The notes below the pieces were generated by a model. That model ran no database searches and was not told the origin of the DNA. It saw nothing but the letters and a program-made list of their open reading frames with translations. The translations under genes were made by a program, and so were the position numbers. This document shows positions 1-9,995 of a stretch of 58,360 nucleotides of DNA, in pieces. This DNA is from Paraphysomonas bandaiensis (lineage: Eukaryota > Protista > Chrysophyceae). Location: the NCBI GenBank assembly GCA_965644295.1, contig CBFFRP010000248.1, positions 1-58,360 on the forward strand, written 5' to 3'. Each line of letters opens with the position of its first letter. Within the stretch, counting starts at the first letter, position 1.

Positions 1-1727
1 ATTCTATGAGTGATTATCCTTGTTAATATTTTCCTACTGACTTCAAGCAGACCAATCGGTCGGAGATTAGTGAGGGAGGATTCTCCTGGTTTCTTGAGAA
101 TGGGAGACATTACCCTGTCTCTCCACCAAATGGGCACATGTTTATGTTTCCAGAGAGATCTGGTGAGGATGTAAGCCTCCCGCTGAACTACCGGTGGCCA
201 GGATTTGACCATGTTGGAGGAGACCATTGAGGGTCCAGGCGCGCGGTTGAAGGAGAGAGAGTGAAGTGTGCAGTAGAATTCATCCTGGGTGATGTCTTTT
301 GCAAGAGTAGATTTGAGTGGTGGCTGCCATGGCCAGAGGGTCTTGGTACAAAGGGCCCCGTGTAACCAGCTGCAGGAAGAGGGATTTTCGAGCGGGGGTG
401 GAGTGGTTCCTGGCATGTCGCTGAGCCCTGGATCAAGAAGGGATTTCCACCATGTAGGGTCCATCCTGGAGCTGCTGTGCTACAGGGTCAAGTCCAGGAG
501 GTTTGGCATGATGTTCACGGAAGTGCGCATTAATGCCTTCATGAATGTCTTGCGGTGTTGTGAGGATGTGTCCGTCAGTTGTTTTCACCGTGGTAAGTCG
601 GAGTGGTGTTTTGACCTTGAGACCAATTTTCTGAAGAATTGCTTGAAGTCTTTCTGCTGTAGCAGTGCCTCCATCTGATTGGTGCGAGCCGTGAGTCTAG
701 TCCGCATTTCTGTCCTGGCTCTTCCATGAAGAAGTCCTCTCAGTCGTGCAAGGCACTTCGGAGAAGGTTTTTCTTGGTGGCTTGCTTTTCGTTCCAACCC
801 AGGATTACCGTCGTGGGTCCGCGTCGCGATGGCTGCACCAGAAGTTGGTGTCTGATATGCCTTTGATGTGGACCCCGAGAACTCCTGCAGATAGGAGTCC
901 CATCGGATGAACCATGCAGTGATGATTTCGTGGGTGGGGGTGGTTGGCCGGGGGCCGCGCCATCCATGCCGTTTGTATCCGGCAGAATTGAACATCTTTT
1001 CGGATAATCCGCAAAACCATGATCATTCCTTCCTGTATTACTCTCATTTCCGGGGAAAAGCCATTCTTGAACTTTGAGCGTTTGCGCTGACAACGTTCGT
1101 GTAGTCGTGTGCTATAAGTACATGCAGGACGCTTCGCCTCGAGCGAAGCCTGGAGGGTTATGTGATGGATGGCCGCTAGTCTGTCGGCTGCCACCCTCAG
1201 GAGGGAGTATGGCAGACGATCCGTTGTCAAATGTGGTAGTTGTGCATGAAGTTGGAGGAGTCTTGCGGTGTATACCTGTACTTCCTTGGAGTCCTTCGGG
1301 TTTACATTGAGACGGGGGGGGATTCGGAGGTGCGACTCAGGTGGTCGAGGGTCAAGATTGACTGGTACAGTGAAACCGACCCAGACCGGTCGATGATCGA
1401 AGGCTGCTGCGAGTAGTGAGGGGGAGTCAAGGCAGCCAGTGTCCGTAACAGACATGTTCGGAAGTAACGGCGTGTGTAGAATATGATCGATCCGCGATAT
1501 TCCTTTGTCTAATCTGTGGAAGGTAAGTGATATGTTTTCCCGGGTAGGAGAAGCTCATGAGAGTGGTGCAGCCAGTTGGAGTTTGTCGGCAAGTGGTCGT
1601 ATGTCTCTGCTCTTCGGATTTGTCTCCATGGAGCTTATTGAAGTCGCCGGCGACAATGACAGTATGGTCCTTGGCTCTGGCTTTAGTGACCCATTTCGTA
1701 AGGATGTTGCATAGGAGCTTGTAGGGG

Positions 1728-4700
1728 TCAGCCGTACAGATACCACGGGACGCTCTCCCTAGCTTGGTCAATTTGCTCCATAATGTGCAAGAGCCTGGCG
1801 TGGATGGCTTCGGGGGTAGATAGACGCTTATTAGTACTAGGGGTGTGCGCCACCGACGTTTTGAACTCTAGTCGGCTCACTAAACCAAGTCCCGTAAAGT
1901 CAGCCTTTGTGAAGGCGAGACGGCGCTTCCAGTATTCGCTGATTATGACTACTGTACCCCCCATTAGTGGGTCTCTTGAAGTCAGTTTTGGCTGCTTGCT
2001 GAGGAAGAGGCATATTCTTGATCCCTGGATTGCATCTTCTATGATACGTGTGAAGAAGTTGGCCTGAGTTTCTGTTAGACGGACATCCTGTAATAGGAGC
2101 ACGTCCAATTTTTGCCGCTTAAAGTGTCGGATGATAGCTTGGACTTTGCCTGTGTGAGATGCCGGATTGCCATTTGTGTTCCATGTGGAGAGTCGGAGTC
2201 CCATGGCTGCTCCCGAGGGAGCCTTGGGGATGCTGCTGGAGGTCTCTGTAGGAGTTCCACTCTTGTCTGCAAGGAGTCTGTCCCATACTGCTTTATTGGC
2301 ACCGCCTATGTCGCTGTCGTACGCAGCCCTGGCTTGGATTAATATCTCAAGTGGCCAGCGTTGATCACACCAGTAATGATGCCCGTAGTTGATGAGAAGT
2401 TCTTCATCCTTAGCAATGGGACGTATTGTACGGACATAGAGGCGTTTATTTTTCGTGACAAACTTGACATTAGCCATGTTTGTGGCTAGGGGGTCATTAA
2501 TATACCCAGCTTCGCATGTTACACATTGTCGGACTTGGTCAAAGCCATCTATTGCGAAGGTACCAGTACTGTCTTGAACTATGTAATCAGAACGCCTTGC
2601 AGACTGACTCAGCTTTGTTAGTGGATAGCGTTTGCCTTTGTACTCAGCAATGATGACGTCTGCTGGGAATGTGTTCTTCGCATAAAGGGATAGTCCTTTG
2701 GCAGTGTTATCGGCGTACGCAATGTAGAACTTTCTTGACCAGTCCTTGTCCCAGCTGGTGGTATCAAGTGCTGGAGTTGGTCTGATCGTTCGTGTGGTCG
2801 TGGATTGGTGTGAGTTGTGAAGGTTCGTTGGTTGGTCACTTTCATCGTAATTTACGACCTTTTTGGCTTTCCGGGTTGGCTGGCATCGACTTGTCAACGC
2901 AGTTTGGGCGTGTTTCAACTGCATCTTCCTGTGCGATGGTAGTGCTCCAGGGGTTGAAGCCTGCAGAATCTGTCGATTTGTTCGTGCTAACTTGGTGCTG
3001 CTGGACGAGGTTGTTCTGGTGCTGGTCGTCTTTGATGTCCTATTGTTGTTCGTGATTGAGTCCGCGGGAAGTGTAGGTGGAGCGATGGGGTCAGACGTTG
3101 AGAGTATACTGGTGGCCAAGGTGTTTTCAAGAGATAGTAGGGCGTTGTCTAGGGCAGTAGAAAGACCGGCAGGGTCTAAGAGGAAGTAGTGAGCATCTTG
3201 TAGTATGACATGGTAGTAGTTATCACGAATAGCGTTCCTAAGTTCCTCCACCTTCCATGCGATGTTATAAGCTACTTTGTCAGTAGGGATACCTACAATG
3301 CTGAGATAATTACCATTTTGCGCCCACGTCGTGCAGGGGTTGATAGTAGAGGCTAAAAGGTGGACCTCTCGCACTGAGAGCCAGTGAGTTATGTCGTCCT
3401 CCGTAGTGTATGTTGTTTTGGCAGGTATTAAAAGTGCGGCCTGTGCGTGATCCAACTTATGTCGTAGTGGCTGAAGTGTGTGATGGGCCATGCACTCCCG
3501 TTGCATTGTGTCGAACGCTTGGGTGCCTAATGTATTTATAAAAGATGCTAGCGTGTGACGGTCCTTGCGTTGTTTGAGGTCTAATTTCAGACAGGAGCGA
3601 GTGTGTCGCCTGCTTGAAGCAAGAATGTGCAGATGATAGAGTGTGCTGTATGCGCAGTATCCATCACTTGGGATATGTTGTTGTGTGCGAAGGGCTGAGG
3701 GTCTGAGGGTGAGGCGATAGACTCTGCTCATGTCGCACATATGGAGCCTGAGTTGTCGACGGTCCGTGGGGTTCATCTGCCGTAGTTGACGTCGAGCTCT
3801 CGGTGACAAGGAGACTGCAATTACTTCCCTCTGTTCCTGTTGCTCTCTTTGCTCATGTAGCATAGATGGTACAGTTGACGGTTCCGAAGTCCAGATGATG
3901 TTGGTGCTCTGTCTGGAGGTCTGGTGTTGTAGAAAACAGGATAGCCGCTCCTGAGTTCGTGTTAGAGCGTGCATGATGGAGGTGGGGATATTTGTTGCAT
4001 TTAGTATGTGAAACCCATGCTGGCTGCGTATGATGTCATGGGTTACCACAGTGTTGGTAGAAGCGTGCACTGTTAGTGCCTGTCTGGAGAATGGTGATAG
4101 CTGTGCCCAACCAGGCGCCAGGTGCGGTTGAACAGCGTCCCATAGTCTGTATGGTATGGAGAGAAGATCGAGTAGCAGTTGGAAATCCTCCGTGTCTAGA
4201 TGTAGTCCTGTGTGTGGATTCGAGGATTCATATTGCATAAGTGTCTTACGGAGAGTGACAGTGGCTGTTGAGGGAATACCCTTTGTCAGGCAAAGGGTCC
4301 GCACATGCCTAGATACAACATGAGTGGAGTCTGCCCAGGGTTTGTTGCCATTCGCGAGATGCTGGGCAACTAGTAGGGCGCTGTGCGTGGTGTCCAATTT
4401 GTGCTCTGGTAGCGTGAATGATATCATGAGATCATAGTTGTCCGTCCTGGAAGCCTTGGCTATGAATCCTTCCCATATGTCTAAACAGGCAGGGGATAGC
4501 ATGTGTGCGTATATTTCTTTTAAAAGGTTTCCCTGTGGGGAGGCAGCAATGGTTTGGGTTTCATCATATCTAACCCAGTTGTTCGGCAGATCGGAGTGAA
4601 AGGGCGTGTGACCCCGGCCCTCTGTGTAGTGTAGGGGGTATGTGGCAATATCCTTGGGCAGTACATCCGGCCTGAGGTCAGGAGTGGTAGTGGAGAGTGA

Positions 4701-5996
4701 GGATGGGCCGTCTGGGGCTAATGCTGGAGTTCCCATGGTGTTCAGTTGAGTAAGGTTGGTGGTAGGTGGCTTCCGTTTGACTGGGAAATAGTCAAATAAC
4801 GTTGCATACGGTGTGGTGGCATCCTTAGTGGGTAAGGGTAATGTGTGGGTGGATTTGCTGGGTCCGTCACCGCTGTTATCGGAGGAGAATTCCTTCCCCT
4901 GAAGGGCGTGGGAGGGATGGTTGATGGACCTGGCACGGTGGACTCCTTGCATTCCCTTGGAATGACATTGCAACACATTTTGGAGACGCATGATGACGAG
5001 GTCAGGAATTCTCTCGAGTAGCGCGTGTAGTTCCAACTCCACCGGGTATTTGGTGTCCAGGAAGAAGTGATCGTTGGAGCAAAACACATCATAAGATGGA
5101 AGGAATTGAGTTTGTGGAAGGAAGGAGGAATAGTGGGTGGACCAGTACGCCCAGTAAGGGAGAGGCGATAGTTTGTCTGGGGGTTTTCTAGGAGGAGGTA
5201 GAGTGTACTGTGTGTGTGTATGACACTGCAGTGGTGTTATGAGTGTGTTGGACAGAGAGAGAGAGCTGGTGATGTGTCCAACAGTACAGGTAGACAGGTA
5301 CATGGACATGGTGATGTGTCCAACAGTACAGGTAGACAGGTACATGGACATGGTGATGTGTCCAACAGTACAGGTAGACAGGTACATGGACATGGTGATG
5401 TGTCCAACAGCAGTAGAGGTATACACGGAATGGTATACATCCTGTAGGACACAGTAGTACAGTAGTCGAGTATACCGTATGCGGAATACAGTGTCTATCC
5501 AATGAGATGGATGGGCTGTGGGGGTGATAGGTGAACAGGGTGAGGGGGTAGCCTGCTGGGTGGATGGACCACAGACAAACCATGTTGGGTTGGGTTGAGT
5601 GGGCGGCAGAAGGCAGCCCTGTTGCACAGTTGAGAGGGATCGAGAGTATTCAGTGATTGCATAGGGGGTCCATGGGGGTCGTTTTCGTGAGCCTGCTCGC
5701 ACGAGCCATGTTCTGAGAGGTTGTAGCCGTAGAAAGCGATGGGTGAGACGAAGTTGTCTGCTGAGGGGATAGCACGTAGGTGCGGTCAGCGCTGCATTGG
5801 TGCAGGCACGTGGTTTAACTGAAGTAGTTGAGTAGGGTGAAGGTTGCAAGGCCAGGCAGGGGGGCTTGGAGCGTGTACAACATGGTGTGACAGGTAATTT
5901 GTCGGAAGCGTGGTGGTCAACAAAATGCAGCAGTAAGGGAGTGTAAAAGGCCCTGGGCACACTGATGTGACTCAGCCACAGTCTCAATAGAGACAT
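1728..5996 (-). CDS. LINE polyprotein N-terminal ORF (1422 aa): OTU-like protease (~3180-3680), SET domain (~2370-2730), APE N-terminal half
   Basis: OTU-like IPSDGYCAY...QDAHYF. SET: KGLSLYAK...IAEYKG...AGYINDP...NVKF...IRPIAKDEELLINYGHHYW. Then MGLRLSTWNTNG. The true start may be downstream of 5996. Confidence 0.85.
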   Translation of the reverse strand: MSLLRLWLSHISVPRAFYTPLLLHFVDHHASDKLPVTPCCTRSKPPCLALQPSPYSTTSVKPRACTNAALTAPTCYPLSRQLRLTHRFLRLQPLRTWLVRAGSRKRPPWTPYAITEYSRSLSTVQQGCLLPPTQPNPTWFVCGPSTQQATPSPCSPITPTAHPSHWIDTVFRIRYTRLLYYCVLQDVYHSVYTSTAVGHITMSMYLSTCTVGHITMSMYLSTCTVGHITMSMYLSTCTVGHITSSLSLSNTLITPLQCHTHTQYTLPPPRKPPDKLSPLPYWAYWSTHYSSFLPQTQFLPSYDVFCSNDHFFLDTKYPVELELHALLERIPDLVIMRLQNVLQCHSKGMQGVHRARSINHPSHALQGKEFSSDNSGDGPSKSTHTLPLPTKDATTPYATLFDYFPVKRKPPTTNLTQLNTMGTPALAPDGPSSLSTTTPDLRPDVLPKDIATYPLHYTEGRGHTPFHSDLPNNWVRYDETQTIAASPQGNLLKEIYAHMLSPACLDIWEGFIAKASRTDNYDLMISFTLPEHKLDTTHSALLVAQHLANGNKPWADSTHVVSRHVRTLCLTKGIPSTATVTLRKTLMQYESSNPHTGLHLDTEDFQLLLDLLSIPYRLWDAVQPHLAPGWAQLSPFSRQALTVHASTNTVVTHDIIRSQHGFHILNATNIPTSIMHALTRTQERLSCFLQHQTSRQSTNIIWTSEPSTVPSMLHEQREQQEQREVIAVSLSPRARRQLRQMNPTDRRQLRLHMCDMSRVYRLTLRPSALRTQQHIPSDGYCAYSTLYHLHILASSRRHTRSCLKLDLKQRKDRHTLASFINTLGTQAFDTMQRECMAHHTLQPLRHKLDHAQAALLIPAKTTYTTEDDITHWLSVREVHLLASTINPCTTWAQNGNYLSIVGIPTDKVAYNIAWKVEELRNAIRDNYYHVILQDAHYFLLDPAGLSTALDNALLSLENTLATSILSTSDPIAPPTLPADSITNNNRTSKTTSTRTTSSSSTKLARTNRQILQASTPGALPSHRKMQLKHAQTALTSRCQPTRKAKKVVNYDESDQPTNLHNSHQSTTTRTIRPTPALDTTSWDKDWSRKFYIAYADNTAKGLSLYAKNTFPADVIIAEYKGKRYPLTKLSQSARRSDYIVQDSTGTFAIDGFDQVRQCVTCEAGYINDPLATNMANVKFVTKNKRLYVRTIRPIAKDEELLINYGHHYWCDQRWPLEILIQARAAYDSDIGGANKAVWDRLLADKSGTPTETSSSIPKAPSGAAMGLRLSTWNTNGNPASHTGKVQAIIRHFKRQKLDVLLLQDVRLTETQANFFTRIIEDAIQGSRICLFLSKQPKLTSRDPLMGGTVVIISEYWKRRLAFTKADFTGLGLVSRLEFKTSVAHTPSTNKRLSTPEAIHARLLHIMEQIDQARESVPWYLYG
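5267..5410. repeat. 42-bp tandem repeat (~3.4 copies) in LINE 5' region
   Basis: The unit TGGTGATGTGTCCAACAGTACAGGTAGACAGGTACATGGACA starts at 5267, 5309, 5351 and 5393 (partial). It is frame-preserving (TCTVGHITMSMYLS). Confidence 0.95.
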
Positions 5997-6169
5997 TGGG
6001 CTTGGAGCTGGTTAATAGAGTGAAACTTTATGTTGGACTGTATTTGCCATCGTAGGGCAGAGAATTTTTAACATGTAGACTTATTGTTTGGATTCTTATT
6101 GGAAGAAGCCTTGCCCATATTGAGGAATGTCATGAATACCTACTATTTTTCGCAGGATATAAGATATAC

Positions 6170-7711
6170 CAGGGCCTGGTAACCATTAATGGCCCATTAA
6201 TGGTATTCCAGTTCCCCGCAATTATAATGGCATTAATGGCCTATTAATACCTACTAACTTAAAGTAGATAGCACCACTCATATAATAGATGGTGTTGTGC
6301 TCCCTTAATTACTAATTTTTAGTTAAATATTAGCAGACTACAAATTTTAACTACTTCTCGCTCTCTACTGGCACATCAGGACCTTCTTTCAGGGCTTCAT
6401 GGAGGGTATAAACATCCCACAACATGGAATTGGCTCGTAGAAATAGCAACGATTCTAGACGGAATGGATTCATGTCTCTACGCTTATAGGTGTCATAATT
6501 AACTTTGCACGACTAAAGAGCCTCTCAACAACATTAGATTGTGCTTCAATATGAAGCAAGCAGCGGTAGTTGGACTCATATGTACCAAGTCGAGCTCTCT
6601 TGGTGACCTCGGCGCTGTCCAGAACACGCTGTGCAAAATCAGTTCCTTCAATCTCGTCCTCGTTATTTCTGTCGGGTACACCAACCTCCATGGATGAATC
6701 CAGTTGCAAATGTCTAACTGCTCTTCTCTCATTGCCTGTCAACTCTCTTTCATCGTTCCCTTGAATTTTAGCCACTGCCTTCTCAATATTTGCACTGGCA
6801 ACAAAATGCTTGCATTCGGGGAAAGGTATGAATGCAGCTCTGGAAATTCTGGCGGGCTTGGTACAAATTTGTTCCATCTCTTTGTAAGGCCAGCGTAGCA
6901 CTCTCTAGAATTTTTCAAGTTGCGTCAAAAATTGTTTCAGCTTTCAAAAGTTAGTTGGAGTTAGAATCTGGAGTAAGGAGATACTTTCTTTCTTATAAAA
7001 GACAATAAATCGCCAACGTGAAGTCTTTCATTTCCCGAAATTCTCTCGAGTTCCTCTCGCCAAGAAATATTTGGCGCCCTTCTTGGCTTTATGATTCTCA
7101 CAAGTCGTGTAACCTCGCTGTATACTTTGTTTAAGGCGATCATTGCACAACAAACAAATATGATACAGAGCACTGAGAGAATTCTCTGAATCCACTCGGA
7201 AGTCGGAAGAAGACTCAGACTGTAAATTACACTGCCATCATCGTTGCTAATATATGCTATGTATGGTATATGTACAGAGTATACTTTCTTTGCTTAGTTA
7301 GCTTCTTTCAACTTTGGGGAAAAATAGTGTTTTTATGAATGTTTTTAGGCGAAATATGCATATTTTCAATGATTATTTTAGAGTTTTATGGGTACGTTGC
7401 TATGAATATCGCACAGGACACTATTCTCTGACTCTAGAATGCATTTAGAAGACAATGAACAAAGTTGCCACAGAGTGCCAGTAGAGTTGCATGAACATTG
7501 TTGTCTAATATTGTTTAGAGTTTCTTCGGAGTGTAGAGGAGATACTATACTCTTAAGAACACTCAGTTCTATGTATAGCAGTATAGATCATTAATGGTAG
7601 TCCTGTTCCCGGCAATTATAATGGCATTAATTAAAAATGTCCCGGCAATTATAATGGCATTACCATTAATGACCCATTAATGCCATTACCATTATTGGTT
7701 ACCAGGCCCTG
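6170..7711 (-). mobile_element. hAT DNA transposon, internally deleted non-autonomous copy (family A, copy 1)
   Basis: TIR CAGGGCCTGGTAACC...GGTTACCAGGCCCTG with a perfect 8-bp TSD AGATATAC (6162-6169 / 7712-7719). Subterminal CCATTAATGG / ATTATAATGG repeats. Transposase remnants include the hAT C-terminal QSNVVERLFSRAKLIM and an N-terminal CxxC...GY...H BED-like finger. Confidence 0.93.
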
Positions 7712-9791: not shown

Positions 9792-9995
9792 TTTATGGTG
9801 TGTGTTAGCTGCATGGTTATCAAATAAATAAGAATGTAGGATTTACTACTATTCTTCCATGAATGGTATCAGGTTCTTGGTTTTGGTCAACATCTATAAT
9901 AGCAAGAGTGCTCATACGACGAATGCATGAATGGATTTACTCTTTTCTGAGCATGGTAGCTGAGAGCAGTTTTCAGTTTCGAACCTGACATTCTT

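Follow-up and report, generated by a model that had tools for sequence, protein, structure and literature searches.

A SET domain fixed upstream of the endonuclease in a clade of LINE retrotransposons from Paraphysomonas bandaiensis and environmental assemblies

Can a SET methyltransferase domain be a lasting, working part of a non-LTR (long terminal repeat) retrotransposon? The question is raised by the first 6 kb of a 58,360-nucleotide stretch of DNA from the chrysophyte Paraphysomonas bandaiensis (GenBank assembly GCA_965644295.1, contig CBFFRP010000248.1, positions 1 to 58,360), the whole of which we call the window and which begins with a copy of a long interspersed nuclear element (LINE). 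An earlier reading made from the letters alone (hereafter the sequence-only reading) had claimed that this LINE encodes SET directly upstream of its apurinic/apyrimidinic endonuclease (APE) and reverse transcriptase (RT), in one uninterrupted open reading frame (ORF). We find that the LINE, called family A here, is a recently active, autonomous APE-type non-LTR retrotransposon and that SET is fixed upstream of APE across a whole LINE clade. We are highly confident of this anatomy and of SET as a functional, selected module.

The window copy lies on the minus strand, with its 5' end at about 6070 and its ATG at 5996. Pfam recognises a SET domain in its ORF (PF00856, aa 1101-1205, E 4.8e-9), with 37 bits against a cut-off of 22.4 bits and over profile positions 1-105 of 105. 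All the SET motifs quoted by the sequence-only reading (KGLSLYA, IAEYKG, AGYINDP and EELLINYGHHYW) were found in this ORF, and the APE start STWNTNG (within LRLSTWNTNG) follows about 60 aa after SET in the same frame. The claim of a single SET-APE-RT frame holds for the family but fails for the window copy, where the frame ends in mid-APE at a stop (1728) that is the product of a frameshift relative to intact copies. Likewise the APE C-terminal motifs (TVIVAGDFN, SRIDHIL and DHRPVW) and the first RT motifs do lie downstream on the same strand, as claimed, but in the other two frames. The contig starts where the window starts and truncates the copy there, about 30 residues into the Pfam RT domain. 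The features of the window copy are listed below.

1..6070, minus strand: family A LINE copy with its 3' part missing, corresponding to positions 1-6019 of the ~9.36-kb element
5997..6070, minus strand: 5' untranslated region (UTR) of ~74 nt, common to full-length copies; similarity to other copies stops at ~6066-6070 (junction compared in three copies)
1728..5996, minus strand: ORF of 1422 aa comprising the N-terminal region, OTU-like domain, SET and first half of APE
5267..5410, minus strand: 42-bp (14-aa) in-frame tandem repeat of 3.4 units in the N-terminal coding region
3060..3707, minus strand: probable divergent OTU-fold cysteine protease/deubiquitinase domain (moderate confidence), motifs IPSDGYCAY ... 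HVILQDAHYF
2292..2777, minus strand: SET domain and conserved C-flanking helix; Pfam core 2382-2696; motifs KGLSLYA, EYKG, SDY, AGYINDPL and EELLINYGHHYW
1365..2186, minus strand: APE (exo-endo-phosphatase) endonuclease, interrupted by small indels, with frame changes near 1770 and 1500
331..1364, minus strand: conserved APE-RT linker region (~aa 1510-1900 of the intact ORF), with many 1-2 bp indels in the window copy
1..330, minus strand: beginning of RT, with APGP and LRPIGLLEVSRKI motifs; RVT_1 would begin at ~95; ended by the contig start

The sequence-only reading had proposed to collect other copies and to build a consensus from them as a test of the continuous ORF. A naturally intact copy (L032, on contig C440) served in its place; window positions 1-5368 and 5309-6070 align to its positions 6491-473 at 99-99.6% identity. 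This copy has a single ORF of 3016 aa with SET at 1087-1191, APE at 1257-1494 and RT at 1951-2244 (Pfam SET 1.3e-8, Exo_endo_phos 2.4e-9 and RVT_1 1.1e-14), and the order along the protein is an unknown N-terminus, OTU-like protease, SET, APE, RT, RNase H-like region and CCHC knuckle. Only the first RT motifs lie within the window and the RT assignment rests on the intact copy, whose RT has human L1 ORF2p as its nearest solved structure (E 2e-5), followed by R2 (0.09). A 1-kb probe spanning the SET-APE junction finds at least 40 sites at 94-100% identity in the 62.6-Mb assembly, in two subfamilies of about 99.5% and 98% identity to the intact copy. The sequence-only reading had raised the possibility that other copies lack SET; all copies covering the region carry it.

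Family A also behaves as a LINE at the level of its insertions. The element is about 9.36 kb long, with a 74-nt 5' UTR and a 235-nt 3' UTR ending in ...CATTCACTAC(TA) without a poly(A) tail; it has neither LTRs nor terminal inverted repeats, and its APE is N-terminal to RT. Target-site duplications (TSDs) of about 9-21 bp were found in six copies (C440 13, C11 ~10, C15 ~21, C80 ~11, C28 ~12 and C386 ~11 bp), and two copies examined, C296 and C562, have no clear TSD. The 5' ends vary from element position 473 (full length) to 6494, and the 3' end is common to the copies (9830-9834). The 3' two-thirds of the protein gave 1367 first-look candidates in the genome, a number that, set against the junction copies, fits the usual excess of 5'-truncated LINE copies. 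The TSDs, the 5' truncation and the insertion of one copy into another are evidence that the copies arose via target-primed reverse transcription. The nested pair (L043/L044, C15:15414-19758) is a 5'-truncated copy inserted into the 3' UTR of another in opposite orientation, with the TSD of ~21 bp. A further nest of elements was observed at C296:295553-305552 (L031), where an internal LINE fragment of 2287 bp (element positions 2617-4903, including SET) lies next to an integrase-like ORF of 1250 aa that runs on the other strand; about 1 kb beyond the fragment begins another, separate LINE copy, truncated at its 5' end.

The stop in the window copy calls for an explanation of its own. Compared with the intact copy, the last 1.84 kb before the contig end contains 19 substitutions together with 20 indels of one or two bases, whereas the 3.5 kb before it has 11 substitutions and is free of indels. 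The same clustering was seen in three copies known to lie within about 5 kb of a contig end (on C371, C72 and C269) and in two further copies (on C624 and C176). Because the indels are confined near contig ends, are almost absent from internal copies and recur in C-homopolymers (element positions 5072, 5175 and 5541), the frameshifts of the window copy are probably unpolished long-read sequence rather than decay. True decay of this copy is disfavoured by the confinement of its indels to the contig-end 1.84 kb, though it keeps some possibility. Frameshifts near the contig ends of this assembly should therefore not be taken as pseudogenisation. About 19 copies lie at contig ends and all of them are oriented 3'-outward. 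A telomere- or site-specific element was considered and rejected, since the contigs end at differing internal positions of the element and its 3' part is far more abundant; we read the common orientation as assembly breakage in the high-copy 3' region, whose copy number causes many contigs to break within it. Of note, the 42-bp repeat of the N-terminal coding region (perfect unit TVGHITMSMYLSTC, 14 aa) is polymorphic in unit number between copies, the intact copy being one unit shorter than the window copy. Immediately upstream of the LINE, an ORF on the minus strand (window 6473-6901) matched no Pfam family.

The arrangement is not peculiar to family A. In three LINE families of the genome (A, B and C) SET directly precedes APE, and B and C keep the same domain order as A at about 71% aa identity or less. 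In family B (C143) an open frame of 2795 aa holds SET at 874-978, APE at 1039-1276 and RT at 1733-2025, and in family C (C644) there are two SET matches, the second immediately before APE. Searches of public proteins with the SET-APE segment and with the segment from RT to the RNase H-like region (RNH) returned environmental polyproteins only, and SET stands upstream of APE in every one of these relatives long enough to judge. It is recognised by Pfam in P0001, P0002, P0153, P0154, P0160 and P0156, and by profile comparison at 99% probability in P0158 and P0159, the most distant relatives with 31-32% RT identity. The same domain order recurs in independent metagenome assemblies (ENA, JGI and Logan).

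We then asked how strongly SET is constrained. The dN/dS comparison across family A copies that the sequence-only reading had suggested gave too few changes in SET alone (5 nonsynonymous, N, and 3 synonymous, S, shared variants), and a codon-level comparison of families A and B was used instead; over 4 kb, the shared variants within family A stand at N:S = 50:51 against sites at about 3.1:1. Between families A and B, SET is 70% identical in amino acids with pN 0.19 and a saturated pS of 0.67; APE is 75%, RT 74% and the RNase H-like region 75% identical, the OTU-like segment 60% and the N-terminal 750 residues 44-47%, synonymous sites being saturated (pS 0.67-0.80). Purifying selection on SET is as strong as on APE and RT. 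A single acquisition of SET by the LINE clade would be the most parsimonious reading, because the position of SET is constant and the RT and SET distances run in parallel.

The SET domain itself is well defined. Its family profile matches SET and PR domains of the PDB down to 2e-12, and its AlphaFold2 (AF2) model has a pLDDT of 88.8 and a pTM of 0.83. A Foldseek search with the model gave 366 PDB matches at E<=1e-3, led by SET7/9 (TM 0.65, 18% identity), with MLL (MLL3/4 among them), SETD8 and PRDM scoring almost equally; SET clusters of the Atlas reach TM 0.62-0.71. In profile alignment the motifs fall on the GxG, NHSC and DY motifs of MLL3. An alignment of 44 diverse members defines a subtype with the signature AGxGxFA, EYxG, SDY, IDA, C.AGYINDPL and ATR.I..EEL..YG..YW followed by a helix P..LL.A..Y, in which Y, G, Y, N (NH motif), N, Y (ELxxxY), Y and W are nearly invariant; the near-invariant positions include the catalytic-type Tyr in EELLINY and the S-adenosylmethionine-binding Asn in YIND. 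None of the compared SET structures is close enough to point to the origin of the LINE SET, and a viral origin was rejected, giant-virus SETs matching no better than cellular ones. A SET phylogeny joins A, B, C and P0001 in one group at full support; its deeper nodes are unsettled on 150 columns, most rows being context-less fragments.

The subtype (YINDP/YGxxYW) extends beyond LINEs. An exhaustive HMMER scan of 1.84 billion representatives gave only 224 proteins at E<=1e-3, of which the best has 38% identity; the ten of these that were looked up all come from ENA, JGI and Logan environmental assemblies and have no informative annotation. A word-based search with a 201-aa piece of SET returned no matches, which reflects the sensitivity and length limits of that method and not absence. 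Within the host genome the subtype profile has 107 matches, and a Ty3/Gypsy element there (L037, C432:235200-241200) carries the subtype in the order RT-RNH-SET-integrase (INT); a metagenomic Gypsy (P0120) has the order RT-RNH-INT-SET. The Gypsy SETs are more diverged, scoring 70-84 bits against 164 bits to the family profile, and the SET tree neither shows nor excludes a direct LINE-Gypsy exchange. As a means of deciding between single and multiple acquisition, or of LINE-Gypsy transfer, the tree was set aside, its deep nodes giving no answer. Two long proteins from ENA metagenome contigs (P0027, 3923 aa, and P0044, 3532 aa) combine an N-terminal RNase H, RT, the SET subtype, OTU and Ulp1 (C48), without APE or integrase detected by Pfam, and look like a different, unclassified retroelement type that shares the accessory cassette. 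The subtype also occurs in Ulp1+SET proteins and, where genomic context is readable, it is found in mobile-element or multi-domain polyproteins. A context other than a transposable element (TE) was observed in P0077 (1127 aa, Logan contig), which has two subtype-related SET domains and then a protein kinase domain. In the host genome, C505:58012-62790 carries three strong subtype matches placed exactly 2178 bp apart in a tandem array, and two of the three lie in open frames of only 364 aa.

The segment about 120 residues upstream of SET is probably, in our judgement with good though incomplete confidence, a divergent OTU-fold protease. Its 200 residues contain invariant IPxxGYCAY and H...H(Y/F) motifs (GYC and two His) in four relatives, down to 21% identity, and in the AF2 model (pLDDT 69) Cys18 opens a helix (18-31) and His173 lies on a strand (173-177). 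The top 50 PDB matches of this model in Foldseek are almost all OTU deubiquitinases, all at E>=0.04; the VIA comparison gave Z 6.0-6.6 over ~135-140 residues, under the tool's confidence mark of ~8, and the Cys motif, set against the P0044 OTU in a single BLASTP comparison, reached only E 0.005. Between APE and RT lies a linker of about 450 aa (aa 1495-1950 of the intact ORF) that is 72% identical between families A and B. Downstream of RT, at the position of the LINE RNase H, the pattern TDGS / E-L / (S/T)DC / HPE / ADA is conserved in eight relatives, and the C-terminal knuckle C-x2-CG-x3-DS-x2-H-x4-C is invariant in eight relatives. The first 750 residues (including aa 300-750) gave no lead with Pfam or the Atlas.

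A 4.2-kb stretch of the element is nearly complete in DNA runs of three coded organisms and in many marine metagenomes (14 studies in all), and about 58% of it is present in two metatranscriptome runs, both poly(A)-selected and both from a single marine sample. When the contigs of four marine RNA libraries are placed on the intact copy, RT-RNH is covered without a gap (up to 2.5 kb), APE and SET patchily; one contig of 263 nt covers most of SET, and depth drops toward the 5' end. This suggests that the element is transcribed.

What, then, is SET doing in the element? The best overall explanation, which we consider likely but well short of assured, is an autonomous LINE whose giant ORF carries an active, cis-acting SET. 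SET would be an active methyltransferase travelling in cis with the endonuclease and RT on the ribonucleoprotein (RNP) of the element, and its substrate would be a lysine at the nicked target or at the new copy, carried by the histone tail of a nucleosome or by some other protein bound to chromatin. The methylation would aid completion of integration or protect the copy from silencing, and the OTU-like deubiquitinase might act alongside SET. We put forward this chromatin-writing mechanism, possibly with the OTU-like domain, only tentatively. Broader still, and to be taken as speculation, these LINEs may be a marine-protist clade of "chromatin-writing" retrotransposons and the SET subtype a portable anti-silencing or integration-helper cassette across retroelement classes; under this conjecture the subtype, often with OTU/Ulp1, would have been acquired by, or passed between, the LINE, Ty3/Gypsy and the APE-less RNH-RT element.

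A number of observations weigh against an active SET in a fully equipped LINE. The His of the canonical NH(S/C) motif is replaced by Asp (YINDP) throughout the subtype, and the corresponding His of SUV39H1 is reportedly needed for activity. The second Gly of GxG is Ser (G-L-S) in the LINE family of the window, the wider family consensus keeping GxG. In P0158 and P0159, SET has lost both GxG (reading SYY) and the Asn of the NH motif (FIDEA) and keeps YGHEYWC and the C-flanking helix; these may be a pseudo-enzyme branch of the lineage, and their pattern would agree no worse with binding than with catalysis. For the accessory domains, the Pfam OTU family (PF02338) has no match at E<=0.1 in the window ORF or in the intact ORF, and RNase H (PF00075) finds no support from Pfam, a PDB profile search or hhalign, which is why we keep to the label "RNase H-like". 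The metatranscriptome contigs may include DNA carry-over and are thin over SET. A co-fold of SET with S-adenosylmethionine (SAM) and residues 1-45 of the host H3 returned no answer (score 0.00) and counts neither way.

Several of these points would suit a SET that binds rather than writes, that is, a non-catalytic or weakly catalytic module for histone tails or chromatin that tethers the endonuclease-RT RNP to particular nucleosomes, in the manner of chromodomain targeting. The change of His to Asp across the subtype, the retention of SET upstream of APE in P0158 and P0159 despite the loss of GxG and Asn, and its constant place beside the DNA-cutting domain all speak for such a tether, and PR/SET domains without activity are known. 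However, the 44 diverse members hardly vary in the Tyr of ELxxxY, in the Asn or in the EYxG and GxG-type motifs, which is beyond the need of binding, and the targets flanking the TSDs have no obvious common sequence or context (seven copies, at sequence level only). We hold the tether to be unlikely. Rather improbable in our estimate is a SET directed at non-histone proteins, either the polyprotein or RNP of the element itself or host restriction, ubiquitin or repair factors, as an anti-host or self-regulating cassette together with the OTU-like protease. It can draw on the best structural match, SET7/9 being an enzyme with many non-histone substrates, on the presence of the OTU-like domain just upstream of SET in the LINE itself, and on several unrelated polyproteins (P0027, P0044, P0066 and P0062) in which the subtype keeps company with OTU and Ulp1 proteases; yet the match to SET7/9 is modest in TM and identity, and MLL, SETD8 and PRDM are nearly equal to it. 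That SET is a chimeric feature of a single copy, whether through capture of a host gene fragment, through misassembly or as a host gene beside a LINE fragment, was rejected and has, we judge, next to no chance of being right. The position of the window copy at a contig end and its many indels might have pointed that way, but the census finds at least 40 copies with an identical junction, the 3016-aa ORF is intact, families B and C and independent metagenome contigs have the same domain order, and the TSDs enclose whole elements.

TEs are usually viewed as targets of histone methylation, not as carriers of its writers, and the chromatin functions that TEs are known to bear consist mainly of readers such as chromodomains and PHD, of the DNA methyltransferases of some retrotransposons and of domesticated fusions such as SETMAR. 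A SET-bearing LINE lineage would be a natural system for asking whether the chromatin state of new insertions can be set or pre-empted by the mobile element itself, and whether the element draws on histone methylation to bring in repair for target-primed reverse transcription. Its value lies in the retention of SET down to 31% RT identity and in copies that are young, apparently intact and probably transcribed, and the compact, well-folded SET domain of 160 residues lends itself to direct assay. A SET subtype without previous annotation is defined as well, so far only in environmental eukaryote assemblies.

Compared with canonical APE-type LINEs (L1-like and I-like), family A has the same order of APE then RT, likewise a CCHC knuckle at the C-terminus, and also TSDs, 5' truncation and numerous copies of near-identical sequence. 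It differs in having one 3016-aa ORF without a separate ORF1, about 1250 aa upstream of APE that include SET and the OTU-like domain, the conserved 450-aa APE-RT linker and no poly(A) tail. Chromoviruses, the Ty3/Gypsy elements with a chromodomain, likewise place a domain of the chromatin machinery within a mobile-element protein, but the chromodomain is a reader used for targeting whereas SET has a writer-type fold. In SETMAR, SET and a transposition enzyme (a mariner transposase) are joined in one polypeptide; SETMAR, however, arose by exon capture and is a domesticated host gene of primates present in a single copy, and the LINE SET sits in an actively multiplying element and is conserved across the element lineage. 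With compact SETs that lack pre- and post-SET zinc clusters (SET7/9, SETD8, the PR domain of PRDM, bacterial and giant-virus SETs), the LINE SET shares the fold including the C-flanking helix, at TM 0.62-0.71 on the model (0.81 on the smallest bacterial target) and 13-26% identity. There is no orthology between them, and AGYINDPL, with Asp for the NH-motif His, and YGxxYW...P..LL.A..Y set the LINE SET apart.

Our search, which covered papers but not Repbase or Dfam, found no description of SET within a LINE polyprotein. In a survey of fusions between TEs and chromatin genes, SET methyltransferases are among the chromatin domains that gene models show joined to TE domains (Grau-Bove et al. 2022, 10.1101/2021.11.30.470311). 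In the accessible part of its text, SETMAR is the only SET example named and the SET-TE fusions are not split by TE type (10.1101/2021.11.30.470311). Also comparable are the two Gypsy elements described above (L037 and P0120), which carry the same SET subtype within a retrotransposon polyprotein but are LTR-class elements with integrase and with more diverged SETs. Among stramenopile TEs, accessory functions that include a SET-domain gene and OTU-like cysteine proteases are described for the proto-Helentron and Helentrons of Phytophthora infestans (Thomas et al. 2014, PMC4067079). These are rolling-circle DNA transposons whose SET is a separate Clr4-like ORF of ~153 aa (PMC4067079), whereas the SET of the LINE is an in-frame domain of the polyprotein and belongs to the distinct YINDP/YGxxYW subtype.

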